Shown here piece after piece: positions 5,154 to 57,369 of a stretch of DNA of 64,000 nt. Origin of the DNA: Gnetum montanum (lineage: Eukaryota > Plantae > Gnetophyta); the NCBI GenBank assembly GCA_015680685.1, contig MNCI01002312.1, positions 102,655 to 166,654 of the forward strand. Direction: 5' to 3'. Every line of letters starts with the position of its first letter. Within the stretch, counting starts at the first letter, position 1. The position numbers and the translations under genes are program-made. Below the pieces are notes generated by a model. It worked only from the letters and a program-made list of their open reading frames with translations. It had not been told where the DNA came from and did not search any database.

Positions 5154-5154
5154 T

Positions 5155-5172
5155 TGACACCATTATGTAGAA
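5155..5172 (+). promoter_or_regulatory. Degenerate tRNA-Asp primer-binding site
   Basis: tgacaccattatgtaga directly after the LTR; resembles a decayed Athila PBS TGGCGCCGTTGCCGGGGA. The site is clearer in copy C. Confidence 0.55.
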
Positions 5173-30446: not shown

Positions 30447-31359
30447 TTTCTAGAGCATAGTCCTGCATAATCCATACAACTACATGTTCATACACTTTTG
30501 GTCATTTTATGGAGTAGACTTGATAAGGGTGTAGCACTAGAAGTAAATTATTACTAAGAAAAGAAAAAAGGAAGAGGTTAATACTAAAAGTAGATTCTAT
30601 GTTAAAAGAAGAGAGGATTCCTATGATAAAGAGCTATGGAGGTATTAAAACTTGAATAGTGGTTTATGTTCCTTGAAGATTTTTCAAATGCCCAAGTAAT
30701 AAGCTTGAGAATATTTTGGAATAATAGCTTTGTTGGATTATAAAATCTAATTGAATGAGCATGCTTAACTTATTACTTTAAAATAAAAGCTTCAATTCCA
30801 ATTTCTTTTTGGCTCTAGCACATCAGCTATTGTTTAATTAATATTCTAAAATTGCAAAAAGAATGAGATGAGCCATGCTAAGGCTACTGAAAGTAGAAAT
30901 TATTTTAGCCATGGAAAACCTTATGAGAAAAAACTTCATTGCACCCACTTTAAAGTTAATGCTCTCATTAGTTGTAGTTTCTTTTGCTTTTGGTGCCACC
31001 ATTAGCTCCTTACAATAAGGATCCAGGGTTATGAAGGTAGAAAAGACATATCAAAGATATTTAAGCTCTAAAAAATAAAGGAAATGAAGCTACATAAGAC
31101 ATTATCAATATATCAAGCTTATTAGAAGTATTATGACTGTAATGGCTTGAAGAATAACTTAGCACAAATATGTTACCTCATAAGCTATTTTAATCAAGCT
31201 CTAGTATATAAAATTTTATAAATGATGTAAAGTCTAAGTTGCAATATTACGTGTAATGAGTAAAAACATCTCATAATAGTTTTGGAATTGTTGTGATTAA
31301 GAGATTTTGGGTATTTGTGGATTCTCATCTAGATGAGATTCACCCATTTGGTTGCTCAA

Positions 31360-32420
31360 AAGCTCATCTTGATCTTCTGACACCACATCGGCTTTGCTAC
31401 ATATAAGCTTTCCATGTCATCTTCTCTCTACATCAACACACTATTAAGCCTATTCATAAGAATGATTTTTGCTACTACAAACCCACTTTTCCACTTAGCA
31501 AGCTTTGACATTAGCACTTATATTAAGCTTCCTTTTTTATCTAGATGAGATTTTTAGCCTCTACCACATCATCTTCTATCCACATCAGCATGATGTCAAC
31601 AATGCCACATCAGCAACTAGACAAATTACACTTTTCATCTAGATGGGTTTTGCTTCCTCTACCATGTCATCTTCTACAAGCATTAGCATGATGTTTGCAT
31701 ATGTCATGCTAGCATCTCATACATGTTAGCTAGAGGCCAAGTTAGCACACCATATCAGCATTGCCACATTAGGTTCTATCACATCATTGTGAGGTTGGAA
31801 AGTTGCCACATCAACTTCTAGAGGTGGCTCATAATGGTGATTACTACCTGAATGAATATGTTCTACCACATCAACATATGTCATGTCAACATAAATTTCA
31901 TGCCATGTCAACTCATAGAACCAACTTGTGAAGTAAAAATTCAGCCCTACAAGGTCTCTTTTCCATGTCAATAGTTCCATGATGACTTTGCCACTTTAGC
32001 TTTCTACTATGTCAACATTTTGATTTAGTTTGAAGGATGAAATTTCTCCTCTATAGAATATCTCTACCATGGATCCACATTAGCATGACATTAGCATCTA
32101 GATGAAGCATTATTTTTCATCTAGATGGGTTCCATTGCCTCTATCATGTTAGCATGATATCATTAGTGACATCAACAAAGTGGCATGTTAACTTGTAGAG
32201 GTAGTTCATGAGGATTATTTTAGGCTCTATAAACTTACTCTACCATGTTAGCATCAGTGACATCATTATGACATCAACATTATGCCATGTTAGCATGTAG
32301 ACCCATTTCACACAGTTAAAATATGAACTAGCTCTACCAACTTAGCATGATGCCATGTCATCATAGTCACATCAACACCTCACTACGTCAGCATGTATAG
32401 CTCATTTTCAAGGCCACATT
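31360..32420 (+). repeat. Degenerate tandem array of gccacatcagca / catgtcagca / tcatctagatg motifs in U3
   Basis: Many interspersed variants; consistent with deaminated GCCACGTCAGCA units. Confidence 0.7.
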
Positions 32421-32822
32421 CCAACCCCATTCAAGAGCACATGAGGATCTATCCATTGAATCAAATCATTAAAAAATGTAATGTTACAAGAAGTTACTCC
32501 ATGGTTGGAAATTAAATAGCTTTAAAACTAAATTCAATGAACCAGGCTCTCTTAATGAAATGTGATTATCATTGAAGGAACTCAAAATGTGGAGGATTTG
32601 TAAGATAGTTATCCAACATCCTATGTAAAGAGGACATTTGGCGGCTATAGCTTTTAACTTCTATGGTAGTTGTAACTAAATTCTTGAATATTTGTAACTA
32701 ATTTTAAATTCAAATGATGTTAGTAACTACCAAGAAACCACTATAAAAGGGCTTCAAGGATTAAAAAAAGTGGATGAAGGAACTAAGAAGAAATATTGAA
32801 GATTAGTTGTAAAATGGCTTAT

Positions 32823-33759
32823 TAATGAGTGTCAAAATGTTGTGTCAATGGGTTCCCATTGATGTGGCCTTGTCAATGGGCCCTTGTTGATGGGGCCCCA
32901 TTTACATGATGTTGTCTCATCAATGAGGTCATGTCAATGTAGCATTTCCTAGATTGACAAGGCCTTGTCGATGTAGCCCTAGAATAAAACCTATAAATAT
33001 GAGCTCCCCACCTATGTTTATGCATCAAAATTCATAAGAGTAGCAGAGCTCTTATAGTTTTTACATTTGAATGTTAGAATATTTTCCTGAGTGCTAGCAA
33101 TAGGAATCGTTGAGTGTATGGATGTTTATTCCAACATTGTTGTACCTAAGCACAATAGTATGTATGATAATAAAGATGATCTTCTTGATAAACTTTGCAA
33201 CATTATGGATAGTTTAGATATTTATTCATGCATTTAATGCTTTCAGTTATTTATTTAATGTTTTCCATTAATCAAGCTAATTAAGCTAGATAGATTAAAT
33301 ACATAAGTATGACCACTTTGAGCATAACACGTATTCACATGATAATCCTAGTAACATTATTGCTTGGTGCACCTAGTAGCGTAATGCTTGGTAACTCAGT
33401 AGTGGATATGTGGGTTTAAGAAATGTATGAAAAGTGAGATTGGATGCTTGTGTTAGGACTAGCTAGAGACTAGTTAGTTAATTAAATCAAATTAGTTATT
33501 AAATCACTCTATCTCTCTTTTTAAGTACCAAAGAACAAAAAACATAAAATGATAAAAATCATATACCTCGATTACACTTAATCATACCATGTGTGTCACA
33601 AGTGTAATTGGAAAGATAACAAATGACCTTTGGGAAAGATTCACTTACTAGAAGACTAGTGCATTTGAAATTAGGAATTCCACAAAATTAAATTGGATTG
33701 TGCTTGAATGCTTCATGATTCATATGGTTGACCATAGTAGTACCATTAATCACTTATCA
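32823..33759 (+). repeat. 5' LTR of copy C
   Basis: taatgagtgtcaaa...cttatca; direct repeat of 46960-47890. Confidence 0.9.
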
Positions 33760-33760
33760 T

Positions 33761-33778
33761 TGGTGCTATTGCTGAAGA
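33761..33778 (+). promoter_or_regulatory. tRNA-Asp primer-binding site (Athila-type), decayed
   Basis: tggtgctattgctgaaga equals TGGCGCCGTTGCCGGGGA after C>T/G>A transitions. Confidence 0.75.
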
Positions 33779-35151
33779 CTTTGTTTGTTGAAACATGTAC
33801 TATCTAGGTTTAGTGGATATCATTAATATCATTAGATGAACCTTAACATTAATATCATTTCCAAATAAGATAACGACAAAAACACATTGATACTTTATTT
33901 GCTTACAAAATGTCTTCTTCTCATAGGTGAATTGATATGAAACCACTGGTCCCACAAGAGCGCGAAGTGACATAGACTCATCTAGATTATTACGTGCCTA
34001 ATTTCACCTTTATCCTTGTTGGCGACCGTTTGGGATGCGACCGCCAAAAAGTGTCCTCGAATAGGATTTAGGTGCCTGCTGGTCTCTGGCAACACCAAGG
34101 CCCAGATACCTTCAAATAAACTCAGTAGTTAATGTGAGTATGTGTGTGTGCTGTTGCNNNNNNNNNNNNNNNNNNNNNNNNNNNNNNNNNNNNNNNNNNN
34201 NNNNNNNTTCACAATAAAGCTATTCCAAATTCAATATCTACGAATTATTCAAACCTCCAAGGCTCAACCAAGCAATATCTTCAAGAAAATCCTACTGTGC
34301 AACCAAAAATTGCTGCGTAAACTACCACGTACGAGACTCCACTTTGACTAGACAATAGATGCCAATGATTGCATTCAAAAAGAACCTTTAAAATACTTGA
34401 CAATTTTTGATTGAAATAACACAGAAAATCACTTTAAAGATAAAGAAGCTATTCTGGTCCCATCAAAATACCAAAGATTTTCTGAACCCTCTCGACTACT
34501 AAATTGNNNNNNNNNNNNNNNNNNNNNNNNNNNNNNNNNNNNNNNNNNNNNNNNNNNNNNNNNNNNNNNNNNNNNNNNNNNNNNNNNNNNNNNNNNNNNN
34601 NNNNNNNNNNNNNNNNNNNNNNNNNNNNNNNNNNNNNNNNNNNNNNNNNNNNNNNNNNNNNNNNNNNNNNNNNNNNNNNNNNNNNNNNNNNNNNNNNNNN
34701 NNNNNNNNNNNNNNNNNNNNNNNNNNNNNNNNNNNNNNNNNNNNNNNNNNNNNNNNNNNNNNNNNNNNNNNNNNNNNNNNNNNNNNNNNNNNNNNNNNNN
34801 NNNNNNNNNNNNNNNNNNNNNNNNNNNNNNNNNNNNNNNNNNNNNNNNNNNNNNNNNNNNNNNNNNNNNNNNNNNNNNNNNNNNNNNNNNNNNNNNNNNN
34901 NNNNNNNNNNNNNNNNNNNNNNNNNNNNNNNNNNNNNNNNNNNNNNNNNNNNNNNNNNNNNNNNNNNNNNNNNNNNNNNNNNNNNNNNNNNNNNNNNNNN
35001 NNNNNNNNNNNNNNNNNNNNNNNNNNNNNNNNNNNNNNNNNNNNNNNNNNNNNNNNNNNNNNNNNNNNNNNNNNNNNNNNTGATAAAATATTATAATTGT
35101 AACTATCATAGGAAGTTACAACTTCCATAGGAATAATAGCCAAATGTCTCC

Positions 35152-35158
35152 TTTTATA
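35152..35158 (-). promoter_or_regulatory. TATA box of the solo LTR
   Basis: Minus strand reads cctataaaagg, the same motif as ctataaaagg at 32741 and at a similar distance from the LTR end. Confidence 0.65.
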
Positions 35159-35285
35159 GGATGTTACAAAAATATTTCATAACTGGCTTTTCATCATTTT
35201 CTTAAATCATAAAATATTTTATTATTATTTATATCATAGTAGTAAAGATAGTAACCATGGAGTTGTTGCTCATTTCATCATCCAT

Positions 35286-35540
35286 CTTCATAAGCTTTTC
35301 CTCTGCTTTGGATAAGTTTATGCTGCCTCCACATTTAGTTGACAATGCAAATATCATAATTGACAAAGCGGACATTCATTCTTTGATCTTCTTTCAGCAT
35401 TTTGTTCTAATGATAATAAAGTCACGTTGAAGCAACTTCAAATAATTGACCTCCCAACACCAGAGGCAATATTCGGATTCATCCTCACGCTGATTATCAA
35501 TATTATCTTTGTTAATACCGTAGCATGGACGTTGCCTGAT
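35286..35540 (-). pseudogene. FAS1: Captured fragment of chromatin assembly factor-1 large subunit (FASCIATA1/p150) N-terminal region
   Basis: Translates IRQRPCYGINKDNIDNQREDESEYCLWCWEVNYLKLL..IIIRTKC*KKIKE*MSALSIMIFALS..INLSKAEEKLMK. This matches the recalled FAS1 motifs GQRV.YGV..EDE.ESCLWCWE.RDLK..RTCRKKIHERITAVSAM..DLSKA.EKLGK. Both stops are TGA at Arg (CGA) positions. Not in the supplied ORF track. Confidence 0.8.
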
Positions 35541-35993
35541 GTTGCTGTAGATGTTTCATATGGCTTTGGCTCTCCCAGGGGCCGCATTTCACGGTTCAAT
35601 TGGTGATGATGGCCACGACGGCCACCATTCCACCATTGCTCGGCCTCTTCATTGTCCTCTCGTTGCTCTGCTACCGTTGACTGGAAACCCTACAAACCCT
35701 TGCTGCAGAAACTTGCGAGAAACCCTGCCATTTTCGTGAACGTCGCGGTTGCACGTTTCTCTTGACGTACGTCCACAACGTCGTGCCGATGCCACCACCG
35801 TCCTGCTGCTGCTGATATTGCCCACGCGCAGTCCTCCTTTTTGCGGCCACTGCTGCTCCGTCGTCCTCTCCATCGGTGCCCATTGTATTATATTTTTTTG
35901 TTTTATTTTTTGGGGTCACCGCGCCAGCCTTGAACTCTGTCCGCGCCCGCTTCTTGCTAAGCTCCTCAATGGCCTTTCTTAGCTGCTCCACCT
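35541..35993 (-). pseudogene. GC-rich exon-like captured fragment(s) of unidentified gene(s)
   Basis: Abrupt GC/CpG-rich segment; translates [29 protein letters not shown]...QYQQQQDGGG. Confidence 0.45.
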
Positions 35994-36817
35994 TTGAATT
36001 CATCAGAATCATGTGCAAGTAAGATGAATAGATCATCATCAGTTACATCTGAATACAGACGACCAGGAGCACTAAAATTTCTAATAAAGAGACCAATTGC
36101 CACTGGTATGAACATTGGATTTTTGACAAGTTGGCCAGGCGTAGGAGGAATTTCCTGCCTAAACCTGAGAGTAAATGTTTTTTCTTCTGCGTCGTAATGT
36201 GATTTTACTTGCAGAACAGGGGTTCCAGCCTGTGAATTCCATAACAAGAAATTTGAAAAATTCTATTTATTTGCATCTCTCATTGCAGCAAAAAGTCTTC
36301 ACATGTGACTGCCTGCCCATCATGTCTTTGAAAGTAGAGATCCATCAGCGTAATTACTATCAGTTGCTGTCTCTGGGGATGCTAAGACAAGTCTTGAATT
36401 GAATATATTAAGGCTTTTGTTTTCCATTGCACCCATGTTAAAATCAGGTATAGCAACTATATTAAATAGATCAAGATCATATTCCAAACCAAACACATCC
36501 TCATCCCATTTCATTGCTGCTTTAAGGGAATACATAGCATAAGCAGTCTTTGAAAAGTCCTCTGCAGGAGTCCAAATGCGGAGGTTAACAGTGCGTCCCG
36601 ATTTTGTTACAAAAGTGTCATCCCTGCTAACTAACCGGCCTGCAACCAAAGCAAAAAGATAGGAAGGCTTCTTAAAAGGATCCTCCCATACTGCATAGTG
36701 CCTGCCACCCTCTAAGTCTCCATGTTCCTTCAAATTACCATTCGACAAGAGAACTGGATACAATGCCTTATCAGCCTCAATCCAAGTTGTATATTTGGCC
36801 ATTATATCTGGATGGTC
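35994..36817 (-). pseudogene. Processed, internally deleted fragment of plant M1 aminopeptidase N-like gene (At1g63770-type)
   Basis: [51 protein letters not shown] (36817-36346); [31 protein letters not shown] (36345-36089); [15 protein letters not shown] (36088-35994). No introns; the HExxH region is missing; frameshifts and a stop. Confidence 0.95.
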
Positions 36818-37004
36818 CAATGCCCTGCTTGGGTTTTCATTGTTGTTTAGATAGCACAATAATGTTTCCATAAATGAGGTTGATGCCGTTGATGACATTT
36901 GATAACAGGAACAGGTCAAATATATCAACCTTCACATAACCAAGGCTGAATGAATCTCGTATGAACTTAAAGGAGAGAATCTTCATTGTCCGATTTCAAC
37001 AAGG

Positions 37005-37080
37005 AATGAAATCCCATGGAATGGTAAGATTTTTGCATATGGGCCACATGGTCCTTGGAAGGAGGCTCTGCAACTTTTGT
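37005..37080 (+). pseudogene. Possible PLS-class PPR motif fragment
   Basis: TRNEIPWNGKIFAYGPHGPWKEALQLL resembles the PPR consensus [26 protein letters not shown]. Confidence 0.5.
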
Positions 37081-37369
37081 CTATTGGTTGGTTCAAGGAT
37101 GCAAGAACAAGGCCTCTAAGATTTTGGGACATTCAACCATACCTTTGTGGATGCGAACCAATTAGCCAAAAGCTTGTCTTAATCAACATGATAGACTCCA
37201 AGGTGAAGAAACAGAATCTCAAAAATCTCTTTTTAATTTTTCAAAAATCACCATAACCTTATAAAGCCTATTCCATGAAATGGCCAAAATGTGCTAACAA
37301 TCCTACATTAGGATGAGCAACTATGATGGCGTGATATGGAGGGAAACATTGTATTGCCCCCTAATCAAT

Positions 37370-40300
37370 CTATGCCCAAGATGTTGCTTCAAAGTTTGAG
37401 GAAGTTAGGCATATTAGATCTTCAAGAAGAATACGTTGTAAATGGTTATGAGACTTAGGACTACCATCCCATTGACATACAATGCAAGCAAGATTGACAT
37501 TAGGAGAGGCATCATGAGGATGCTAAGGGGAAACAGTTCACAAATATCTTATTCCTACTAAATCAAGATGACAATGAGGATACTCCCTCTAAAGGCTCTT
37601 AGCATGAAGACTATCTATCCTTTGTTACTAATGATAAGGCTGTGACCTTGAATCTATAGTCTACAATCCACAATTTACGTTTAAAGAAAGATGGCAATCA
37701 ATGTAAGGGATTGAATAAGCATCAAGATTATACAGAAAATAGTGAATGTGGCTATGATACCCAAGGGGAAGTTGGTAGATTTCATGCTAGAGGTAGTCCT
37801 CCTTGCTCTTCTTCCCTTTTATCTACATCCACCTCTTCTTCCTCTTCTAATTATGAAAGACATTGTAGAAGGAACAACTCTAATGGAGGTGAGCATTGAG
37901 GCAATAATCCTAGTCGCCATGCCCATAATAATCAAAGAGATAGTAGAGGACATCATCAATGACAATGAAATCATGATGTTGATGAGCCTTTGTTGATGAC
38001 TTAAAGCATGCTTAACATTGTAGAGGTAGTTAAGATTCCAACTAGGTATGTGAAATACAATTGGATGAAGCACTTAAACATGAACAATATCCCAAGATTT
38101 AAGGGGGGATACAATTCTGATCTACAAACACATCTACAACCTTTCCATGATGCCTATGTCTTACAGAACATTGAAAATGATTAGCAAAAACTCAAGCTCT
38201 TCCTTAGGATACTCATCAAAGAAGAAAAAAGCTAGTACTGATCTTTAGAGCTAGAATCTATCCATCGATGGAGTATAATGCTTGAGCTATTCAATGACAA
38301 ATACTAGATGTACTCCATAGTGTCCAATTTGAGAAGAAAAATATATGGCTTGAAACATGCAACACATGAATCCTTGGATGCTACCATGGGCCAATATTAC
38401 CCTCTCTTACATTGATTCCCTAACCATGGTTACTCTCAAAGGAAACAACTCCATCACATCTTAGATGGGCTTTGAGAAGAAACTAGAAGAACTCTTAGAG
38501 TTTATGCCCAAGGGATATTGTCTAAATTAAGAGCTCATCAAATCCAAAGGATGATAAAGAAAGTAGCAAAAGAAGAAGGTGAGTTACAAAAAAAAAGAAA
38601 AAGTGTGAAAGAATATAATAGGAATCCCTCCCTCAAAAAATGGGAGGTCTAATTTTGTGATGAGGAGGAGTCATCACTTGTTAAAGTAGTGAATAGGAAA
38701 ATCTTATCGATTTAAAAATCTATTTCTAATATTTTGGCTAAGGTTGATAAATTATGGAACTCTTTGAATGAAAAGTTCCAAACTACTATGAAGTTAATGG
38801 AAGAATCCAAACAAAAGAATAATGATTATGAATGTAGGAGATAAAAAGAAGCTAAACATGCTTACTAGAGAGGTAAGGGCAAAGCTGATGTAGTATAAGA
38901 AGTTATGAAAACTAACTTTGATGATGATACTAGTTGTAACATTTGTCAATATGAACATCCAAAGGGATGCTATCCTATGGTGTCACAATCATAAGAGTTT
39001 GGGGTGTACGCATTGAATACTTGACTAGCACATAGGCAAGCACCTAGATGATTGCTTTATCCTCAAGGCAATCCAAGATTGTTCCACCAAAAACAACAAG
39101 CTTATTACTCAAGCGAATCACCACCACAACCATATGAGAAATACCAATAATGGCATCAACCACAATCATGGGGAATGCCACCACCAAGATAGCATTACCC
39201 TTATAAATAATTAGATCCATATGGGTACTATGTTCAACAACCTATTTCTCCACAAAGCTCTGCAAGCCATGCATGATTCTAGCATCACTATTATCCTCTA
39301 GAGTATCATCAAACTCATTCACCATCTACTCAAGGAAAGTACCCATATTCATACCATCTTTCACATGTATCTGCACACATCCCTTCACCCTCTACCTAGT
39401 TACCTCTTACTCTATCCATGCAAGGTGAAATGCCCCCACAGTGGTAGCATGCTATGAGGGCTTTGAATTTACAGTTGGTTTTCTAGCTAATGGTTTAGAC
39501 AATTGATCCAGGAAATGATCATTTTTTTGATCCAATAGTCCTCACAAGCCCTCACAACCTAATATGGCTACTTGCTTTGCATCTCCAACATCCTCATTCT
39601 CTACATCAAATATATTTGAGTGTCCTTCAAACCAAACGCTATCTTAGATCAACACTATGATGTTAAGTCATGTTGTTTATAATTGGATCAAGGCTAGCAA
39701 CCTTCCCACAAAAATATTTGACCCAGAAAGTCCTCTTATTTACTTACAAATCATTGGACATGGGCCATGCAAGGGTCTACTTGATTCTAGTTTTAGTGTT
39801 AATCTCATCTTCCATAATATGTACAAGGCTTGGAACCTACCACCTCTCAAGAAAAGTAACATCCATTTAAAATTGGTAGACCAGTCAAGCACTATCCCTT
39901 TGGGGTTAGTGAAGGACATTGTTACCATAGTTAATGGGTGCTCCTATCCTACCAATTTTCTGGTGATCAAGGTTGAGAACTACAAAGGTGACTTCCCCAT
40001 CATTATGGAAAGGGCATGTTTAAGAAAAATTGATGTGAAAATGGGTCTAAGGGGCCTATCTATAAAAATATCCAAGGAAAATGAATTTGAAAGGTTAAAG
40101 AAGAAGCATATTTCATGCATTGCATACAGTGATAATGGGTGCAACTACATGCAAAAAATCTAGTCCATAAAAAGTACATACATTAAAGCATGTAATTAAT
40201 GTGCACAAGACATAAATATCTAAAAGTACCTATACATAGTAGCCATAAAATAGGAGGATACCCAATGGATGATAGCTAAATCTAATAGTAGTACAGTATG

Positions 40301-42470
40301 CATGGAACCAACTAAGAGCCTAACATGTGCTTATGTCGAAGGCATAGATGAACTTAAGTAAGTTCATCACCAACTCTCTAATAATGAAGATGATGATACG
40401 TATTGGAGAGAGTTGGAAATTCCTAATAATTTCAAATAGAAGCCCCTAGAGTTAAAAATTCTACCAACTGACATGGAATATGCATTTTTAAACAATGGCA
40501 AGTTGGTCATAATCAATGTCAAACTTGCTTCTAAACAAAAAGAAAAGCTGTTAAAGGTTGTTAACAAATGGCCAATAGCCTTTTCTTGGTTGTATCCTAA
40601 GTTGACTAGAATTAATCCAAGGATATACTAGCATTTCATCTACACTGACCTAGCCATGAAGCTAAGAAGGTAGCCACAAAGACGGCTAAATCCCAAGTTG
40701 AAGTAGATCATCAAGGAGGAAATAGAACAACTTCTTAAGGTGGGGTTCATCTATCCATTGCGGATAGTAAGTGGATTAGCTCACTCGTAATTGTTCCAAA
40801 GAAAGGTGGTAGGTGGTAGGTTTGCATCAATTTTAGGTTGTTGAACATGGCAACATTTAAAGATCATTTTCCATTGTCATTTGTGAACCAAGTGTTGGAC
40901 AGTATATCAAAGCATTACTATTATAGCTTCTTGGATGGTTATAATGGCTATAACCAAATCCAAATTGCACTAGAAGATTAGGCCAATACTACATTCACAA
41001 GTCCTTGGGGGACTTTTACATATTATAATATGCCATTTGGTCTATGCAATGCCCGTCCAACATTTCAACACCTAGTCCTTAGTATTTTTCAATAGCAAAT
41101 TAGTAGCAAGGTAGAAGTATTCATGGATGATTTTTCTACCTATGGGGCTACATTTGAGTAAGATTTGGACTGCCTTGAGTAAGTAATAAAGAGATGTGTT
41201 GAAAAAAATCTTAGGCTTAATTGACAAAAGAACCATTTAATGATCCATGAAGGCATAGTATTGGAGCATAGAATTACTCAAGCAAGGATTGAAGTAGACC
41301 TAGGAAAAATAAGGCTCATTTAAGGAATTACACATAAAAGGACCTAATGTTCCTAATGTAGATCAACTATGAATTCTCCAGGATGCTCACAAAGGACCTT
41401 GTAGAGGCCACTATGTAGGGAGGTGCAAAACCATAAAAATCCTGATGGAAAGATAATATTCACCCACAATATTTAGGAATGTTCACTAGTTTGTTTGATC
41501 TTATGAATGTTGTCAAAGAGATGGTGGGATGACCAAACAAATGGAGGGTTCTTAATAGTGGATTCAACCAGAGGAGCCCTTTGACATATGGGGCGTATAC
41601 TTCATGGGTTCCATCACACCCATGTCCAATGTAAAGGCATATATTATCATAGCAGTCAACTACTACACCAAATGAGTAGAAGCAACAACCATCACCAATT
41701 GTACATCATCCATTGCTACTTGATTTATATAAAAAAATGTTATAAATAGGTTTGGGATACCATGTGCACTAATTTCTAATAATGGAACTCACATCATAGA
41801 TGCCACTTTTAGAAGGTTAATGCAATGCTTAGGGGATGAACATAAATTAACAACACCTTATCACCCCCAAGCCAATGGTCAAGTAGAGGTAACCAATAGG
41901 GAGATTACAAAGATCTTAACAAGGACCATAAGAAAATATAGGAGTGATTAGAGCATAAAATTCAATGATGCCCTATGGGTCTACTATTTAACATGGAAAC
42001 TTCCTATTGACGACTCTCCCTACAAGTTAGTGTATAGAAAAATTTCAATGCTCCCAATCCAACCTGAGCTCCATACACTCTCAATAGCCTATGAACTAGA
42101 TCTTGACCTAAATCTAGCACAAAAAGAAAGATTGATCAACCTCAATATGCTACATGAGAACTAGTTAGTGGCCTTATCTTTGAATGAAGTGCACAAAGCA
42201 TTCAAAAAGCAATGACATGACCTAAGAATATAAAAAGTAAAATTCCAACCTGGAGATAAGGTTCTCTAGTGGAACCCAACACATGTACCACAAAAACCAA
42301 AGTTTTAAACATTGTAGGAGGGGCCTTACATAATTACTAAAACCTTTCCTTTTTGGATCATGAGCATCTACAAACTTGATGGCCCAAATAAAAGGCAGTT
42401 GATCAACATCCAACAAATAAAGCATTTTCATGAGCCCAAGCAATACAGTACAATAAATACCTCTAAGGAT
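37370..42470 (+). pseudogene. gag-pol pseudogene of copy C, with the RT end and RNase H deleted
   Basis: PR GLLDSSFSVNLI (~39780); RT FLDGYNGYNQI and VFMDDF (~40930-41135). At ~41340 the sequence jumps from the copy-B position ~9440 to ~10280. INT YHPQANGQVEVTNREI. Confidence 0.9.
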
Positions 42471-43950
42471 GAACAACCACATTCAATTTTTTGAATCACC
42501 TCCTTCCAAATCAGTCATGGGGGAGATGGACATCCATGCTAATCATCCATATGGCTTATTTTTTCTATTTTTTGCCTTTATACTTGTTTTTTAACAACTT
42601 TTTAATTTTAAATATTTTTTCTATTTTACACCATCTTTGTTTTACACCATCGTTAGTACATTTAAATATTTCTTGAATATTTTACAATTTCTTATATATT
42701 TTACTTTGTTTAAGTGTGATTTTCAAATTTTTGCTAATAAACATGCTTTGTGCGAGTAGGACACAGTGGTCCTGTGGTTGCTACTAATGGTGGTTTGTGC
42801 TTTCTGTTTGGTTTGCTAATGTCTAGTTCTCATTTTTAAATTTTTGTAATGATGACTTAGGCATGGTTTATTTTTCATGGAACAAGCAATGAGTCCGCGA
42901 CATCCACCCATTTACAAACTCTATGGCTTTCCTTATTTTGGAAGTTTGAGGTCCCTTTCATTAAATAAACTTTTAATCAATTGGTAACCTTGGTAGTTTC
43001 TATAATTGGAAAGGATTCAAAGATTTGTACAAGGTGTGACTTTAAGGGGTCTCAATACTCTTTGTACTTTTCTACTTGGATGCTTGAGTGTTTTCATCAA
43101 CTTCTTACTATTCCATGTTCCAATAATAGGAAGTTCAATAAGGTCTTTGCATGGTGTGGTTTCCATACAAAAAAGAAAAACAAACAAAAAAATAAAATGA
43201 ATAAAAGAATAAAAAAATAGGATGGAAATTCAAATCACATCCCTTAGATGAATAAATAGGCTATAAGCACTAGTTATGGGACTAGAAAGACATGTTACCC
43301 ATGCTTGAACATCCCCTATAACTAAGGCCCTATCTCACTTCCTACTTCTCTCTTCTTCTCTTTATGAAATGGTGGTTGTTTTATAGGAACACTCTTGTAT
43401 CTTGAGGGACTGGACCAGTCTTAGAGTGGTGATGTGAGGTCACTGAAAGAGGTTGGTTTTGGTCTAGAATAAGGATGGATCTTCTTAGGTCATTTTAAAA
43501 ATAAACTCCACAAGGGACCTCTTATGACTTTCATTTGGAATTCTATTCCACCTTTGATATCATCCATCTATTCTGATCATAATTCATCTTGCTACTAGTG
43601 TCCATGTTCTTGATTCCATGTCTTGGCCTAACATGTTTAAATACTTAGGTAGAATCTTTTGAGTTCTATTCCTTAACTTCCATTGACCATTAATCACCTA
43701 TGGGGCTCATGGATGCCTTAGGTTGAGGTTATGTAAGGGCAAACAAGGCATGTGCCTACTATGGAAAGGATCCATTTGCATTTCTTTTGGTCAGTTTCAT
43801 TATGCACCTTATCCTTAGGCATTATTTCATAAATCCATCTTCTCCATAGTCCAACCATAGCCAAAGTGTAACTATCTAATGAAAGGAGGTATTCAAAAAT
43901 TTAAATTTACACATTATATCTACTAATCCATGAATGTGTTGTAGCCACAA

Positions 43951-46720: not shown

Positions 46721-46959
46721 TCTTCACCACAGTCTTCATGCCATCAAAGGATGTGTTGTCCAAAATTTTTGTAGTCATGTCATGGTGTTCAATTTTGTGT
46801 CATGAACACCACAAATTTTGTAATTTTTTAATTCATGTACTCAAGCACTTAGTATTGTCAAGTTAGTTTGTTTTGTTTTGTAAGAGTCACTCAATAATCC
46901 ATATCTTCCCAATTTTGTAAAAGAAATGGAGGACAAGTTTTCATTTAGTCATGAGGGTA

Positions 46960-47890
46960 TGATGAGCATCAAAGTGTCACATCAATGGACCCCTATTGAT
47001 ATGGCCTTGTCGATGGGCCTCATTTACGTGGTGTTGCTCCCATCAACAAGGACACATTAACATAACATTTGCTACATTGACAGGGCTCCATCGATGTAAC
47101 CCTAAAGATACAACTATAAATATGAGATTTGTAGCCATGTTTATGCATTAGAATTCATAATAGTAGCAAATCTCTTACATTTTTTACATTTGAAAGTTAG
47201 AATATTTTTCTGAGTGTCCACAGTAGGAGTCATTAAGTATACAGATCTTTATTTGAGCATTGTTGTACGTGAGCACGATAGTGTATATAGTAATAAAGAA
47301 AAGCTTCTTGATAAACTTTGTAGCATTCTAGATAGTTTAGATTTTTATTCATGCATTTAATTCTTTTAGTTGCTTATTTAATGTTTTACAATAATTAAGT
47401 AATTAATCGATATAAGCTAGATAGATTAAATACATAAGTACTATCACTTCAAGCATAACACGTATTTTCTTGGTAATCCCAGAAGTGTTATTGCTTGATG
47501 CACCTAGTAGCATAGCACTTGGTAACCTAGTAGTGAATACATGGGTTTAGGATGTGTATAGAAAGTGGAACTAGATGCTTGTGTTAGGACTATTTAGACA
47601 TCAATTAGTTAGTTAAATCAAATTAGTTATTAAGTCACTCTATCTCTCTAATTAAGCACCAAAGAACATAAAACATAAAATGATAAAAATCATATACCTC
47701 GATTACACTTAACCATACCATGTGTATCAAAAGTGTAATTGGGAAGACAATGAATGACCTTTGGGAAAGATTCACTTCCTAAAAGAATAATGCATTGGAA
47801 ATTAGAAAGTCCATGGAATTCAACTAGATCATGCGTGAATGCTTTATGATTCATATGGTTAAGTGTAGGGGTACCTTCAACTACTCATCA
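46960..47890 (+). repeat. 3' LTR of copy C
   Basis: PPT catgagggta, then TGATGA...CTCATCA. Confidence 0.92.
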
Positions 47891-48974
47891 CTTACTAAGT
47901 GTAACATCAATTCAGCTACTTTGTTTAAATCCTAAGTTTTTTCTCATCTCATTTTGTCTTAGTTACTTATGTAATAGTTTACAAAGTACTATTCTTGGCA
48001 TTTAATTTTGCAATTTTCTAATTGCTCTTATAGCTTAAATTTCTTGCACTTTGAGACCACTATTGCTTAGCCATGTAAGAGCTAGTATTTTTCTCTTGAA
48101 AAGCATCTTGAGAAATTTAATAGTAATGTATTTATGAAATTGCATATTCAAGTCTAAAGGATCTAGAAAATATTTGATATTTTGAGCTGACTTAAAATAA
48201 CTTTCATTTTAAAGTTTTTCCTCATGTTCAATCTTGAAATTGTTATAACCTTTTTGATAGCTCTATTTTATGCAATTCTTAACATCTCTTAACTAGCTGC
48301 ATAACAACTTGTATTTTCCTTTTACAAAGCTTTTTGGGAAATTTAATAGGAGTTTCTTTTATGAAATTTCTTATTGAGCTTGAAAGGTTTGGATAATTTC
48401 TAACACATTGGGTTGAATTGGAACAACATTATTTTGAAGTGTTTCCTCATGTTCATTTTATCTCGCTTAAATGTTTGAGATTCCACAAAAATATGCCTTT
48501 TCTTTTCTTTTCATTCTAAAAAATTGAATCTTACTAAATTTCTATTTTTCTTGTGGACTTTTGTCTCTAGAAAAATGTAGGAGTAAATTTCTATAGAATT
48601 ATGCTTAAGCATTTTGGTGAAATTCTTGTTTCAAGCAATGTACCATTGAAACTATATAGAATAAGTGATTTAACAAAATAGAAGCCTGTAATGACTCATA
48701 GTATTTAACAAAGTTATCTATATTTATGTTATAATAGCTAGTTACTATTTAATATACAAACCCAACCATTTTAACAATCATAACAAAAAATACACATTCA
48801 TGCTTAGTTTGCTCCATTACCATTGAGTTTATTTAGAGGTATCTAGGCCTTGGTGTTTCTAGAGACTAGTAAACACCTAAACTTAGGTTTGAAAAAATTT
48901 CTTCATTTCCTATGATCCCGGTCACAAGACTGAAGGAAACATTGGTGGTTCCAAATGGTCGTCAATAGTTCTTT

Positions 48975-48991
48975 TTGCACTAGAAGGAGGG
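48975..48991 (+). promoter_or_regulatory. Tat-type primer-binding site
   Basis: ttgcactagaaggaggg, matching the recalled Tat/Retand PBS TGGCGCTAGAAGGAGGG, just downstream of the LTR end. Confidence 0.7.
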
Positions 48992-49229
48992 TAAGAACAT
49001 TAGCTATTATTTTGAGTTAATGACTGAATAAATTGATAACTCTAAATATTTTGAAAGTCTTAAAAATTTCTCTAATTATAAGACCAATTATTCATTAAAG
49101 GATAAACAAGAAAAATTTTTTGAGTTTGGGATAAGTAGTGGAGTAAAAACTAGAAGGACAAGAAGTTCACCTCTTCTATTTGGTTTATTAGTCTTTAGGG
49201 AAAAGCCAAAGAAATATAAGAGTTCAGCC

Positions 49230-52200
49230 ACTAAAAAGAATCCTAATGGGATGATGAATCTACAACTAGTGCATCCTTAGCAAGGAGTTACACCTTTAAG
49301 GTTCCAAAATTACAATGATACTCCTAAGGTAGCTTGCAAATATTTGCTTGAGCCTTTGATTCCTAGAAAAGCTTACTTGGCTGAAGTATACCTTCACTTG
49401 TTTCAGTTAGCCTTAGCTCATGAAAATATTTAATACTAAGAGCAAGCTTATAGGTTGTTTATACCAAATTTGAAGGATATAGCTCAAATTTGATATTCAA
49501 ACTTGCTAAGAAATAGTATTACAAGTTGGGATGATATGAAAAGCCTTGTATTGGATTAGTTTGACAATCAATTAGATAAACAACTATAATATAAGTAGTA
49601 CAAGCTAAGCAATGAGTTGAAGAGTCAATTAGGGATTTCAACATTAAATTTCAACAAATTTGTGGGCTCTTTCAAAGATAGTATAGACCATTAGATTAAA
49701 TGCTTAGAGACACTTATCTTAAGGTTGTGAATCCTAATATTTCAATCTAGTTAAGGGGAACTCAAAACTTTCTAACATTGAATGATTACTTTGGTGAAGC
49801 TATATAGTTAGAAAAATAACTAAACCTAAATAATGAAGCTCAAAAAGAAGAAGAGATAATTATGATCCTTGTGAAAATTTTTCCCAACTTAAAGCACTAC
49901 CAAAGCCTTCTCATATTAAAATAGATCAAGAGTTAGAAAGTAGAGAATATGAAAAAGAAAAAATGAATGAAAGACTTATCGAACAAAGTAGTGAAACTAG
50001 AAAAAGTTTTGGTAAAAGTTAAAATAAAGAACAAAAAGAAAAACAAAAAACAAGAACATCAAGACATTAAGTTAGTAGATGATGAGGATGAGAGTGATGT
50101 TACTATGTCCACCTTCGTCCATATTGAATTTGATAATGAGCTATCTAGTATTCACTACATAAGCAAATCTTCTAAGAATGAATCTAGTGATACCTCTTTT
50201 CAGTCAAGTTTTAAAGAGGATATATCGTTAGATAAAGAGTGTAATAACAATGAAGAAAATAGCTATAATATGTGATCAAAAGAAAAATTAACCACTTCCA
50301 AGCCTCAAAATATTATTTCTAACCCATCTACTATGAGGAATATTTTTTAACCAAGTGGAAGAGGAAAAATAAAAATAAACAAGATCGAATAGAGAAAAGT
50401 ACTCAAAATTAGACTTTTAATAAATGGGTGAAGAAATCATGCTTTTAAGGAGATGAAAAATATAATCTAATTGAGGATCTTAAGCATATCAAGGCTAACA
50501 TCAATATATATCAACTATTATAGATAGAAGATTAGCAAAAGAAAGCTTTAAATCTTATTAAAGCAAAAAAGGAAAATTGGAGAGTCAAAGTTAAGTTATG
50601 TGTCTAACATTGATAAGACAAAAAAAATAGCTATAATTGTACTCTTGATAAAGGAGCTCCTTCATTTCTTTTAACAATAAAGTTAAAAGATAAATGTTTG
50701 CATAATTGTTTGGTTGATTCTAGAACTAAATCTACTATTATGTCATTATCTATATGTAAAAAAATTAGTTTAACTCAGGAATAATTCAATAAAAAGATTA
50801 TTCAAGTGAACAAAAATAGAGTGAATATTATGGGTCAACTACCTAATGTTTTGTTAGAAATTCCTTCTAAATCTAGTATAAAAAGTAGAGTAACTATTCA
50901 AGTAGTAGATATCCCAAATTCATATAGCCTTTCGTTGAGTAGAAGTTGAAGTAAAAATTTGTCAAGATACTTATCAACAGATTATTCAAATATGTGGCTA
51001 CGTTGGAAAGAAATACCAAATCAAATATACATATATAGTGAACCTTTAATGAATGAAAACATTGCTTCAAATGGAAAAAACAAAGTTTCTGGAACAAGAG
51101 CTTTTGAATCCAAAATTTTCACACTTAAGAAGTTTATAACTTGTAAAAAGAGAAATTTCAAGATAAGAGAAAGTGGAAGTTATACTTTGATGGTTCTTGT
51201 AACTCCAAAGGTGTAGGAGCTAGAGTAGTTTTAGTAAAAGATGATTTCCCAAAAATTTTAAAGGTATTTCATCTATCTTTCCATTGCATTAACAACAAGA
51301 CTAAGTATGAAGCTTTGAGTATTGGAATTAAAACAACACTAGAAAGAGGAATCAAGGTGATCATGGTAAAAGAAGATTCAAGATTTGTTTGTGAACAAAT
51401 TAAAGGTAGTTGTATCATAAAAACCTCATTCTTGCTATCTTATAAACAACTTGTTTGTAAAATGTTAAACCAGTTTCATCATTATAAAATAGAACATATA
51501 TGTAAGGAAGATAACCACTTAGTAGATGATTTAGCAATGGCAGCTTTAACATTAGATTTAAAAATGATAGAAAATTATGAAGTGGTAGAAATTAAGAATG
51601 AACATCAACCCTCGATATTAGATAACATAAAACATTTATAGGTATTTGAAGATGATGATCAATTACTTAGGTTTCTCAAGAATAGGTAGGAATTCAAAAA
51701 TAAAATCATACCCAAAACAATGTTAAGGTTAAAGCCAAATTTCATTCTGAAAAAAGTAATTGATTATGAACAAGAGTTTAGCAAAATGTTTCTTATAGGA
51801 AAAGAAATACAAAATCTAGATGATTGAGCTTATGAAATAGTAAAACTTGAATTTACTAAGACACCAAAGATTCTAAACATTACAACGGGAAAGAATTTAG
51901 TTTTCAAGAAAAATTTATTATTGTTGTTGAAAAATAATTTACAAAATTTTTCTTGGTATTATGATGGCCTTAAGGTCTTTAGACTAGATGTGATGACACA
52001 TAAAATTCCTTTGGTAGATGGTTCTAAGATAGTTAAATAAAAGAAAAGAAAATTCAATCCATCATTTAAACTAACTATGGAAGCCAAGTTTAGGAAGTTA
52101 TTACAAAATCAAATCATATATTCAATCAAATATTCAAAATGACTTCTTAATCTTGTCCTAGTAAGGAAGAAGAACAATGATATCAGGGTTTTTTATGAAT

Positions 52201-54518
52201 TTTAGAAATTTGAATGAAGCCTCTAAAAAAGACACATATTCACTTTTTAGAATTGATGAGATGTTGATCAAAGTATTGGGATGTCAAGTATACTCTTTCC
52301 TAGATGGTTTTTTATGCTATAATTAGATTTTGATAAATAAGGGTGATAGGTATAAAACAACAGTCATTACCAAGTGGGGAAATTTTTCTTACAAAAGAAT
52401 GCCATTTGGATTATCAAATGCTAGAGCTCCTTTCCAAAGAGCTATGGATTTGGATTTTAAGGATTTAATAGGAAAAATTATCATGATTTATTTAGATGAT
52501 ATTACTATCTATTCAAAGAGGAAGAAAAATCATATTGGCCAACTCCACCAAATTTTTGATAGATGTTGTGAATATAGTATTTCATTAAATCCTAAGAAAT
52601 GTATCTTTGGGGTTAAGTTTGGAAGCTTGTTAGGTCATGTAATTTGTCAAAAATGAATTACTATGGATGATTCCTGAATTTAAGTAGTACAGAAGATTAA
52701 GCATTCAACAAATAAAAGTCTCTTAGATCTTTCTTTGGAAAGATAAATTTTGTTAAGAAACTTATCCTAGGATTAACTGAAATTACTAAAACTTTGATGC
52801 ATATGCTCAATAAAGATGTATCAGTAAAGAAAACACCAAAATCAAAGAAAGCCTTAGTAGAAATTAAAAGGACTATTCAAGAAGCTCCATACTTGGTAAA
52901 GCTAAAATTAAAGGAAGATTTCTAGTTATATGTTTCTACCTCAAATGATTAAATTACTATTGTTTTAACTCAAAGAGACAAAGGTCAAGATGAAGCAATT
53001 GGATTTTTGGATATCATCTTAAGGTTTTGAGCTAAATTATTTTGATTTAGAGAAACAAGAATTCCAAATTTTAAAATCACTTTTATTGTTGGTTTGTATA
53101 ATGTTAATACAACCTATAGTTAAGAAATTTTTGGCTTAAAATGAAATTGGATTAAAATGAGAGAATTGGCTTATAAAACTCCAAGGTTTCAAATTTTCTT
53201 TGGAAGTATGTAGAACTATTAAAGCAATGGGATTAGAAAAGTTAATGAATAAAAAATATGAAACATGTATGTTAAGGATTCACAAAGGAAGTTGGTATGA
53301 GGAAATTCTAGAATTTCTTACTACAAGAAAAGTTCCAAATGAATTTACTGCAAGTTAGAAAAGAGATTTCTTCAAAAAGGTAAATAAATTTGTGGTTAAA
53401 GATGGAATTTTATATATAAAGGACTTCAAAGAAGTTTTTTTGGAATGCATTCATAATAATCAAATTGATCCTATTATAGAACAATTTCATGATCATGCTA
53501 ATCTGTTTTATGAATCTCCTAAGTTCACAATGTAACATATACTTTGCTATGATTTTTATTGGCCTAACATGTACCAAGATAATAGTGCAAAGATTCAAAG
53601 ATGTTATAAATGTTAGATTCATGGATCAAAAATCAAAAAGGCTAGAGCTCCCTTAACACTAATAATTATCAATAGGCCATTTCAACAGTGTAGTTTAGAT
53701 TTCATTGGCACAATTACTCCTTCAAAGGCCAAACATAAATTTATTCTTGTAGCCACTAACTATTTTTCTAAATGATCTAGAGAAAGAGCTTTTAGGAAAA
53801 ATTCAACATTAGATGTAATTAAGTTTTTAAAAGATCAGATTCTAAATTTCTTTGGTATGCCTAAATTTTTGGTTTTTGATAACAGACTTGCTTTTCAATT
53901 CAAAGAGTTTTTAAAATGGGCATAAGAGAAATCCATTTTTTTATTTTATTATTCTAATTATTTTCATTAGGGGAATGGGTTAGTTGAATCTACAAATAAA
54001 AAGTTTATTTCCTATATCAAAAGATCAATGGATGGGAATTTGAAAAATTGAATCAATTACTTGTAATCTACATTTGGAACTGATTGTAACATATTTAAAA
54101 AGGCTATTGGAACATTAACTTATAATTTGGTTTACAGTTTGCCTCCAAGAGTTACAAATAAAATAAAATTATATGGTTGACTTTAGATTTTGTGCATTAT
54201 GACCTTACTTATTAAAAGAGAAGTTGAAAAAGATAAGCTAAAGCTAATTTGTTAAAAAACACTTCTCAAATTAAGATATGGTTTGATAAAAAGACTATAA
54301 AATAAGCTTTTAGGATTGGTGATCTTGTTTTACTATAAAATATGAGATTTAAAAATAATTACAAGAAGTTTTTAGCCAAATGGAGGGGCCCATTCTAGAT
54401 CAAGAAGCAAGTGTCAAGGGATACATACAAACTCTCCACATTAAATGGAATAAAATTAAAGCTTTCATTTAATGCCTTCTACATTAAGAATTACTTTGGG
54501 AAACCACCCACAATGTGA
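49230..54518 (+). pseudogene. gag-pol pseudogene of the Tat element (gag, PR, extra RNase H, RT, RH, INT)
   Basis: gag SITSWDDMK (~49520); PR HNCLVDSR (50701); aRH WKLYFDGS..NNKTKYEAL..EDS (51175-51600); RT KRMPFGLSNA and IYLDD (52390-52500); INT LDFIG and GNGLVESTNK (53695-54000). Confidence 0.9.
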
Positions 54519-55552
54519 TAAAGCTCAAAAATAGGCAAAGTTGTAAATATGTGCATAGCGGGAATTATTAAAAGAATAAATTAGCTAAAATAAAAGCTAT
54601 TATTACATGTTGTGCAAAATAAATAAGTTATAGTGGAGGTCATATAAAGCATGTAAATTAGTTATAGAAGTAGCTGTAGGTTTTAAAAATTGAAATTATA
54701 TAAGGGAGTTACAATTAGCTAGCATTGACAAAAAGGTTTAGCTTCAGTTTTCAACTACGTTAATAGAGAAATTCAATTCCATTTTTCAATTAAAGTGAGC
54801 TTAGCAAATGGCAGTTAAAAGGCCTTTTATTCCACAAATGATTGGCTACTATCCAAAACACATTTTAAGGGGTTTTTACAAGGCAAAAGCTCATGGGACT
54901 TACCATGATAGCCCTTTCCTACTTTAGCTTATAGCCAAATTTAGCTTCCTCACTAGTGATCACTCTATTCATTCCAATATTTGGAGCGAATTTTCCCGAT
55001 ATGTAGTAAATGCTAAGCTTCAAGAAGAGCTTGACTATGATGATTCCTAGGAAGAAGCTTTCATTTCCTAGGACACTGAGGAAACTAGCTATGAGGAGCA
55101 TCACAAGTCAATAATGGAGAAACTAGTTGAAAAAGGGAAGGAGATAATTTTGGGTAATAATATTGTAAAGGATAATGTGAGGGTTGAAGAAGTGGGAGTA
55201 CCAATAAAACAAGAGAAAGAAAAGAAAGCTTAGATTACAACAAGAATTAAGTATAATAGAATCCAAGATAAGAGAATTCCTAAGAGAGTTACTTTCACCT
55301 TTCTCTTTCCTTCTTCTGAGTAGCTTATGGTATGGCTTCACATGTACAATTTTCATTTCTATTTCTTAGGAATGGGGCTTTTATACCAACAAGCCTTAAG
55401 TTTGATGGAAATTTTCCTCTAAAAAGATTTACTATTTTTCACTATAAAAAGTCCAATAAAAAGCTTTAGATACAATTAAACTCATAGAGTATTTTTTTAG
55501 TTTAAATTGTGTCTTTGATAATTTCTTTAAGAATTTTAAGAAAGATAAGAAA

Positions 55553-56512
55553 TGTTGGTACATTTCCAACCATTTTATGGAGTAGAATTTATAAGGTTGT
55601 AGCACTACAAGTAAATTATTACCAAAAATAATGAAGAGCTTAAGATTGAAAAGAGATTCCATGCTAAAAGAAGAGAGGATTCCTAAGCTAAAGAGCTATG
55701 GAGGTATTAAAATTTGAATGATGGTATATGTTCCTTGAAGTGTTTCTAGATGCCCATGCAATAAGCCAAAAAAGATCTTTAGAATAATAGCTTTTGTAGA
55801 CTATATAATATAATTGAACAAGCAAGCTTACCTTATTACTTTAAAATAAAAGCTTCAATTCCAGTTCATTTTTACCTCTAACACACAAGCTATTGTTCAA
55901 TTAAAGTCCTAAAATTGGAAAAAGAATGAGATGAGCCATGCTAAGACTAATAGAAGTAGAAACTATTTTAGCCATGGAAAACCTTGTGATAAAAAGCTTC
56001 ATTGCATTGAATTTAAACATAATAATCCCATTATTTGCAGCTTATTTTGCTTTTGATCCTACCATTAGCTCCTTACAATAAGGATCCAGGATCATGAAGG
56101 CAAAGAAGGATTAGCAAAGATATTTAAGCTTCAAAAAAGAAAGGAAAGGAAGCTACATAAGCTATTATCAAAGTATCTAATTTATTAGAAGCATTATGAT
56201 CATAATGGCTTAAAGAATAACTTAGCACAATACATTACCTCACAAGCTATTTCAATCAAGCCTTGGTATGGAGACTTTAGATATATGATGAAAAGTCTAA
56301 GCTACAATATTGCATGTAATAAGAAGAAAAAACATCTTGTAAGCTTTGTGGAATTGATCTAATGAAGATCTTTTGGACATTTAAGGATTCTCATCTATAT
56401 GAGATTCATTGATGTAGTTGCTTCAAAGCTCTTCTTGATTTTTCGACACCACATCAACTTTGCTACATATCATCTTTTCACATCATCTTCTCTTCATATT
56501 AGCACATTTTAG
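55553..56512 (+). repeat. 3' LTR of the Tat element (first ~960 bp only)
   Basis: Preceded by purine tract aagaaagataagaaa; direct repeat of 30485-31440. Confidence 0.85.
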
Positions 56513-56978
56513 TGCATAGAAAATTTGATCATTGGAAATCCAAAAATCCTAGGTTGCAGTAACCTACCCTTGAATCCCAAGGGTCTCCAAAAATAATATT
56601 CAAGGTGCTCTAGATGGTCTTATCAATCACCCAAGTGCTCTAAATGAAATGAAAATAAAAATAGAATGACATATTTAAAAGAAAATACATTATCACATAA
56701 TTAAAATTGAAAATAAATCTACATGACAACGAACCTAAAAAATTTAATAAACCAAAGTGTAAAGTCCAAAAAGTACATATGGGCACTCAAAGGAAAAGAA
56801 GCTTGAATGAAGCTTGAATGACGCTTGAAGCCTGTTGGAGCTAGTAGATTGTGTTCTATAGTTGATCTCCATGGTTTAGGTACTTCCTGAAACACCATCA
56901 ATTTTAGGGCTCCCATGATTCATCATAATCCCAAAATTTGGGTAAGGATCTCTACAAGCATAGTGTCACACTAAACTA

Positions 56979-57161
56979 TGGGGCATAGCAACCCTATCAG
57001 TGCGGGGCATAGCAACCCTATCAGTGTAGTAGTTCCTGCACTATCCACTACGTTACACTATCTACTGCGTTACACTGTCCACTACATTATGCTATCTACT
57101 GTGTTATGCTATTCACTACGTTACGCCATCCACCATGATATGCTACCCATTGTGTTACATT
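56979..57161 (+). repeat. Leader minisatellites: 24-bp unit x2, then 17-bp unit x7
   Basis: ggggcatagcaaccctatcagtg occurs twice; atccactacgttacact variants run from 57043 to 57161. Confidence 0.85.
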
Positions 57162-57369
57162 GCCTATGTCCTATGTGGCAAAGAAGCCCTATCAACATAG
57201 CAAGTGTAACAATGAAGGAAACCAGTTTCCAATACTTCCAAGTGTACCAAGTTTTAGCCTACCTCTCTTATAGTTTGCAACTATTGCGTACACATATCTT
57301 TCTTGTTTCTATTTTTTTCATAACAAAAAAATGAATCCTATTATCACTGTATTTTCTACTTGAGTTTGT

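Follow-up and report, generated by a model that had tools for sequence, protein, structure and literature searches.

A probable solo long terminal repeat from Gnetum montanum with a mosaic of host mRNA pieces in its presumed U3 region

Gene capture by mobile elements is well known, and several described systems share features with the locus reported here. Pack-MULEs, Pack-CACTA elements and Helitrons amplify mosaics of pieces from several genes. They take up intron-bearing genomic DNA, and have either terminal inverted repeats (TIRs) with a 9- or 3-bp target site duplication (TSD) or, in the case of Helitrons, TC...CTRR ends and no TSD. Among long terminal repeat (LTR) retrotransposons, Tnt1 has subfamily-specific U3 (unique 3′) regions, and experiments with double-copy retroviral vectors have shown that an insert placed in the 3′ U3 of the RNA reappears in each LTR of the provirus. 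The locus studied here occupies positions 34017-37299 of a 64,000-bp stretch of Gnetum montanum DNA (contig MNCI01002312.1; hereafter the window, whose numbering is used throughout). It is probably one LTR of a Tat-type Ty3/gypsy retrotransposon, in minus-strand sense and probably solo, with an mRNA-derived mosaic of several genes in its presumed U3. What is unusual about it is the U3 location combined with the multi-gene mosaic.

Each of these systems matches the locus in some respects and departs from it in others. The Pack-type elements and Helitrons share with it the multi-gene mosaic multiplied by a mobile element, but 34017-37299 has TG...CA ends, a 5-bp TSD and spliced pieces, and it has no inverted repeats; on these grounds we rejected all three classes. 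Double-copy vectors rest on the same principle of passing U3 to both LTRs, but they are engineered and carry one insert. In BARE-2, Veju and Tnt1, as here, the LTR ends and R/U5 are kept, the U3 is replaced or extended, and copy-choice has been proposed; the foreign part there comes from another retrotransposon or is of unknown origin, whereas here it is a mosaic of host mRNAs. The chimeric LTRs of BARE-2 and Veju are attributed to template switching, with transposable elements (TEs) or unknown sequence as the source, in the passages of a review that treat them (PMC13317346).

The maize element Bs1 contains pieces of three host genes, which lie between its LTRs (PMC13317346). Bs1 and other LTR transductions resemble 34017-37299 in holding intron-less pieces of several host genes, taken up via RNA and amplified (PMC13317346; PMC2774510); the position of the cargo differs, since here it lies inside a TSD-bounded LTR unit, upstream of a TATA block. 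In a maize survey (Baucom et al. 2009), LTR elements with pieces of more than one gene were not found (PMC2774510). Ogre/Tat elements have a hypervariable 3′ untranslated region (Macas et al. 2009, as cited in PMC11963269). The likeness lies in a Tat-clade element with a fast-changing non-coding stretch near its 3′ end, but the Ogre/Tat region, as described there, is upstream of the 3′ LTR and a source of tandem repeats, whereas the variable stretch of 34017-37299 is in the LTR and carries gene pieces. For gymnosperms, the available part of a 2026 survey reports ~400,000 TE-captured coding fragments per genome, with LTR elements among the hosts, a first-exon bias, mostly silent copies and two or more fragments in 13.7% of host TEs (PMC13477047). 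That part of the survey leaves the position of fragments within the element unstated and describes no family with constant ends and a variable U3. In the open-access literature, we found no paper that places multi-gene mosaics in the U3 of a plant LTR.

The insertion at 34017-37299 is real. The motif ATCCT stands on either side of a stretch that begins with TG and ends with CA, and a paralogous Athila-like copy elsewhere in the window (4366-5764) lacks that stretch. The paralog aligns in two parts, 4366-5411 with 32990-34016 and 5407-5764 with 37300-37657, which overlap by 5 bp and leave a single ATCCT and no interruption at the site. This uninterrupted paralog therefore identifies 34017-37299 as a true insertion with a 5-bp TSD. 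The insertion site is in the leader of an Athila-like host element with LTRs at 32826-33759 and 46963-47890, 257 bp past the end of the 5′ LTR (33759). An earlier interpretation made from the letters alone (the sequence-only reading) had claimed TG...CA ends, a perfect ATCCT duplication and a landing place in an Athila leader, and each of these points is borne out.

A second element in the window, termed X, provides the comparison by which the unit can be assigned to a family. Its 5′ LTR (X1) is split by the Athila-like element, and after removal of the latter we rebuilt X1 as a 3418-bp unit (30485-32825 plus 47891-48967). The internal region of X encodes, on the plus strand, an RNase H domain (RVT_3, E 1.4e-11) upstream of a reverse transcriptase domain (RVT_1, E 9.5e-15), as well as protease- and integrase-like stretches that were judged by eye only, and a purine tract adjoins the start of the 3′ LTR (X2, 55556). 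Because X1 and X2 flank these domains and the purine tract lies at X2, we take the two to be the LTRs of an old Tat-type element. A second, archaeal-type RNase H in the polyprotein is a feature of the Tat clade of Ty3/gypsy, and its location between protease and reverse transcriptase is the TatI/TatII arrangement of club mosses and gymnosperms (PMC6317226). For this locus the clade-marking RNase H was found in the relative, X, only, and its position there hints at the kind of plant, probably a gymnosperm.

On the minus strand of 34017-37299, four blocks have counterparts in X1, in an unchanged order and with similar spacing (Table 1), and the 1939 bp between the first two have no match in X1 (z −0.3). 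The plus-strand sites 30485 and 55556, both starting with TGTT, match the first ~50 bp of the unit, and the block containing TATAAAAGG lies ~2.15 kb from the LTR start in both the unit and X1. The latter result supports the minus-strand TATA that the sequence-only reading had proposed, since TATAAAAGG falls within an X1-conserved block. Judged by these alignments, the unit most likely behaves as an LTR whose ends and promoter block come from the X1/X2 LTR family. The last ~30 nt of the LTR (34017-34045, and likewise 48940-48967) contain a duplicated short motif, CGGTCGCA ... CGGTCGCCAACA, which is conserved in X1 and resembles a tRNA-primer site when read on the other strand. No host domains were found in the variable parts of X1 and X2.

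The unit is interrupted by two assembly gaps. Contigs of three DNA runs with three organism labels (sets of ~3.1 Gb, mean length near 55 bp), from which the depths given below were also taken, do not bridge either gap, and many of them stop at the gap edges. Each of the outer contigs includes a junction of its own to the Athila-like host element, and the order and orientation of all three contigs agree with a single LTR in the comparison with X1, which predicts roughly 350 bp per gap instead of the 50 and 574 drawn. Only scaffolding positions the middle contig of 299 bp (34208-34506), which comes from the family's most abundant part. Open reading frames (ORFs) listed through the N runs are artefacts, as no real reading frame crosses a gap. 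Between 34017-34506 and 35081-37299 there are no direct repeats, even with 7-bp seeds, and this excludes terminal LTR pairs shorter than ~2.2 kb. Short LTR pairs hidden at the ends were likewise rejected, given that both termini are readable and have nothing in common. We found no tandem repeats in the readable part, and domain searches of it found no gag or pol; in these respects, too, the sequence-only reading, which had noted neither internal direct repeats nor gag/pol, was correct. With no gag/pol in the readable part and a block spacing that fits one LTR, albeit with two unclosed gaps, the locus is probably a solo LTR.

It is unlikely, in our estimate, that the locus is instead a full-length element whose near-identical LTRs were collapsed by short-read assembly and whose internal region was lost in the 574-N gap, an arrangement that would still leave the cargo in the LTRs. 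Such a collapse would be in keeping with gaps that lie in the most abundant part of the family and have lengths that are merely estimates, and with the youth of the insertion (~1% private differences), as young insertions are often still full-length. The three contigs nevertheless yield one LTR with X1-like spacing, and the exact-match contigs of this copy are in the lowest depth class (4.4 and 7.7) and not clearly double, although the latter is weak evidence.

The best-defined cargo comes from an aminopeptidase. Minus-strand ORFs match Peptidase_M1_N/Peptidase_M1 and DUF3458 in Pfam, and alignment to solved PepN structures in the PDB provided the residue ranges of Table 1. Oligo-dT RNA reads with the same organism label span 35907-36995 at ~100-140x and break off exactly at 35994, 36084/36089, 36346 and 36818, which sets the borders of three non-contiguous, intron-less pieces, arranged in LTR orientation and mRNA order with internal skips. 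The three pieces had been named from the letters, and Pfam, the PepN alignment and the RNA read borders all uphold them. In one piece, a run of ~158 contiguous aminopeptidase residues is free of introns, and RNA reads match it end to end. At one junction there is a 4-nt filler (36085-36088), and at the junction at 35994 the donor and the neighbouring piece have ~6 nt in common (microhomology). Compared with the parent mRNA, piece 2 lacks 1 bp at 36289, and in the PepN alignment the part with the HExxH zinc site is deleted. Of the RNA reads from the donor aminopeptidase, 14 lack 70 nt within 36638-36709, probably owing to alternative splicing of the donor gene, which would mark exon borders inside piece 3.

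Next to the LTR start lies a piece derived from a PLS-class PPR gene, in antisense to the LTR. It is blank in Pfam, a word-indexed protein search and Atlas, but exhaustive phmmer returned 37 proteins at E<=1e-3 (best 1.3e-12), and the top seven matches are PLS/E/DYW PPR proteins aligned at their repeated motif. The PPR label and opposite orientation given in the sequence-only reading are thereby substantiated on the plus strand. The label FAS1 fared differently: Pfam, Atlas and PDB searches of 35286-35664 were blank for this domain, and we leave the block unnamed. Two stretches have RNA coverage with fixed differences, namely 36819-36995 (~20-58x, with differences at 36943, 36959 and 36977) and 35665-35906 (~3x, with a rearranged joint), and these indicate at least two further expressed donors. 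Altogether, 1.9 kb of cargo lie between the 5′ end block of the LTR and the conserved TATA block. This is the position expected of a U3, as had been claimed for the cargo. A Bs1-type arrangement, with cargo between two LTRs, does not describe the locus, given this position and the exclusion of LTR pairs below ~2.2 kb. The GC-rich piece contains, at 35665-35760, a telo-box-like TAGGGTTT motif.

Table 1. Features of the unit at 34017-37299 and of the comparator element X, in window coordinates; z scores are for alignment to X1
Feature	Positions	Strand	Remarks
Whole LTR-like unit, TG...CA, 3.3 kb	34017..37299	-	LTR sense is the minus strand
Left TSD copy, ATCCT	34012..34016	.	Single copy at 5407-5411 in the paralog
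Right TSD copy, ATCCT	37300..37304	.	Sequence reading and comparison with the paralog
Conserved 5′ terminus, U3 start	37238..37299	-	z 7.9; ~50 bp common to the LTR starts at 30485 and 55556
PLS-class PPR-derived piece	36954..37253	+	Antisense to the LTR, decayed; part of a far more abundant subfamily backbone
Unnamed piece with expressed parent	36819..36995	-	
Aminopeptidase piece 3	36346..36818	-	PepN residues ~127-284, through GAMEN, ending just before HExxH
Aminopeptidase piece 2	36089..36346	-	PepN residues ~427-486 (start of DUF3458)
Aminopeptidase piece 1	35994..36084	-	PepN residues ~524-558
GC-rich block (52-60% GC)	35665..35993	-	A-rich tract at ~35880-35910
Unnamed block	35286..35664	-	Without RNA reads
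Conserved promoter-like block	35114..35165	-	z 6.0; TATAAAAGG at 35158-35150
Assembly gap, 574 N	34507..35080	.	Unclosed by contigs
Conserved R/U5-like block (290-bp block)	34208..34506	-	z 13.4; extremely abundant; placed by scaffolding only
Assembly gap, 50 N, probably longer	34158..34207	.	Unclosed by contigs
Conserved 3′ terminus (last 141 bp)	34017..34157	-	z 23.5; homologous to 48812-48967
X1, part one: 5′ LTR of old Tat-like element	30485..32825	+	Split by the Athila-like element at 32826-47890
X1, part two: 3′ end of the same LTR	47891..48967	+	
X internal region	48968..55555	+	RVT_3 at 51147-51638, RVT_1 at 52327-52653; purine tract just before 55556
X2: start of 3′ LTR	55556..56506	+	81% identical to X1 over 940 bp, then diverging

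How did these pieces enter the LTR? The sense orientation of the spliced pieces, the skips toward the mRNA 5′ end, the filler, the microhomology and the GC-rich piece lead us to infer repeated template switching, just as the position of the U3/R border and the solo state are conclusions we infer. We consider it rather improbable that the cargo entered at the DNA level, in the form of processed pseudogenes or a further mobile element that landed in a master copy's 3′ LTR and was propagated from there. The A-rich tract, the antisense PPR piece and the frequency of nested LTR insertions in the window (the Athila-like element in X1, and 34017-37299 in the Athila-like element) would suit such an entry, but TIRs, internal TSDs and long poly(A) tails are all absent, and a series of short fragments from a single mRNA, in order and with skips, filler and microhomology, fits copy-choice better than separate LINE (long interspersed nuclear element) insertions. 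The unit as a whole was also rejected as a LINE-mediated processed pseudogene, in view of its TG...CA ends, 5-bp TSD, several donors and lack of a terminal poly(A).

The abundance of the different parts of the unit is strongly uneven. Summed contig depth, which reflects relative abundance and not copy number, is ~0.4-1.1 million over 34017-34575, 23-33 thousand at the TATA block, ~45-1200 over 35300-36900, 9-13 thousand over the PPR piece and 67-89 thousand at the 5′ end. Such a stepwise rise from the cassette to both ends is expected if constant ends surround a nested, variable middle. Contigs with the element's own alleles in the cassette have depths of ~200-300 in all three runs. Examples are a 406-bp contig with 2 mismatches (depth 230), a 445-bp contig (247), and exact contigs of 136 and 158 bp (221 and 298); the 36084/36089 junction is itself spanned, by a contig of 122 bp (230). 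Depths of 4-12 were found for the rarest exact contigs and for the paralogous empty sites. Relative to these rarest contigs, the depth of element-allele and junction contigs is 30-50 times as high. From this comparison we deduce that the cassette is multi-copy and was multiplied as a unit with at least one junction. A single later insertion event confined to this copy, which the sequence-only reading had named as an outcome that would overturn it, is ruled out as the source of the cargo by a cassette and junction that are multi-copy in three DNA runs. Near-identical predicted proteins from other copies were not found in protein databases.

Expression and age were assessed from sites that distinguish the donor gene from the cassette. 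In RNA, the donor letter occurs in 137/137 reads at 36119 and 106/107 at 36263; in DNA contigs it occurs in 0/201 and 0/364, respectively, and the element's letter is found instead. In the single RNA sample the reads come from the parent gene only, with the cassette copies silent. The family version differs from the donor at no fewer than about 7 sites over 825 bp, and at least about 9 further sites (~1%) appear private to the copy at 34017-37299. By these counts, both capture and insertion are young in relation to the surrounding LTR pairs, which have diverged by ~19%.

The most likely account is as follows. Members of the LTR family have constant blocks in four places, namely a short 5′ end, a TATA block at ~2.15 kb and, within the final ~0.5 kb, two R/U5-like blocks, and they differ in what lies between the first two. 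In 34017-37299 this variable part is a patchwork of host pieces, comprising an antisense PPR piece common to a large subfamily and, inside this PPR-bearing backbone, a younger cassette with three spliced aminopeptidase pieces from one mRNA and at least two pieces of other expressed genes. To form the cassette, a reverse transcriptase copying U3 from the RNA 3′ end may have changed templates to co-packaged host mRNAs, moved along them with skips and then gone back. The U3 of the RNA would then have seeded both LTRs, and the cassette would have been inherited by all descendants and multiplied. The doubling of the cargo into both LTRs is expected because the established scheme of reverse transcription seeds both from the U3 of the RNA. 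One copy finally integrated, with a 5-bp duplication, into the leader of the older Athila-like element. The antisense PPR piece, as part of the older and more abundant backbone, may have another origin.

Besides the relative nature of the depths, several observations weigh against this account. The antisense orientation of the PPR piece is not predicted by simple copy-choice from mRNA. No full-length element with the cassette cargo in two LTRs around gag-pol was seen, and X1/X2, the only full-length relative, is old, belongs to another subfamily and has only the anchor blocks in common with the unit. X2 diverges from X1 after 940 bp, X is ~19% decayed, no TGG-type or otherwise convincing primer binding site was found directly after 48967, and a tRNA scan for a primer match found nothing. 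The RNA run is unstranded, with coverage over the LTR too thin to place a transcription start. Finally, contigs leave both N gaps unbridged, and one contig is placed only by scaffolding.

The lack of a complete element with the cassette cargo could also be read as a sign that the units are self-contained single-LTR mobile elements, in which LTR-length cDNA integrates directly and the subfamily has no two-LTR parent. This is very unlikely, as no known mechanism regularly gives such units, homologous ends flank an internal region with reverse transcriptase in this very window, and solo LTR formation explains the same picture. A scaffolding artefact that joined left contigs and a right contig from different copies or elements is scarcely credible despite the two N gaps and the unanchored 34208-34506 segment from a very abundant repeat, because the outer contigs each have their own junction to the same host element with the same 5-bp duplication and correspond, correctly ordered and oriented, to the 5′ and 3′ ends of a single LTR family.

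Returning to the reading of the unit as a Tat-type LTR with captured mRNA pieces, a broader proposal is possible, and we offer it tentatively: this LTR family may use the part of the LTR from the 5′ end to the promoter as an open, heritable cassette that takes up host mRNA pieces time and again by copy-choice, each new mosaic being multiplied to tens or hundreds of copies. Cargo in U3 would be doubled at each replication, survive reduction to a solo LTR and adjoin a promoter. LTRs with such cargo could spread exon pieces, and small-RNA targets against donor genes, better than elements with internal cargo. If the ends of a family are fixed and its middle can be exchanged, this would provide a concrete, testable mechanism for the load of exon fragments in giga-genomes. 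If the proposal is true, cassette-type U3 regions would be the RNA-level counterpart of Pack-MULEs, and could be one major origin, unlocated until now, of the exon fragments reported by the hundreds of thousands from gymnosperm genomes. The single locus itself is of modest practical value, being silent in one RNA sample and encoding aminopeptidase pieces without the zinc site.

Some further features of the window concern the surrounding elements. The Athila-like element at 32826-47890 is itself nested in the older LTR X1; its own LTRs are only ~81% identical, and its putative TSD (ATTAA / CTTAC) is decayed. Past the part of X2 that matches X1 (56507-60073) there are 17/34-bp tandem repeats at 57039-57145. 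Gag-like and protease-like ORFs occur on the plus strand at 57600-60073; they are not recognised by Pfam, and may belong to an element nested in X2. At 12050-12430, a 190-bp direct duplication (98.4% identical) lies either side of a single N at 12240 and looks like a gap-closing artefact.

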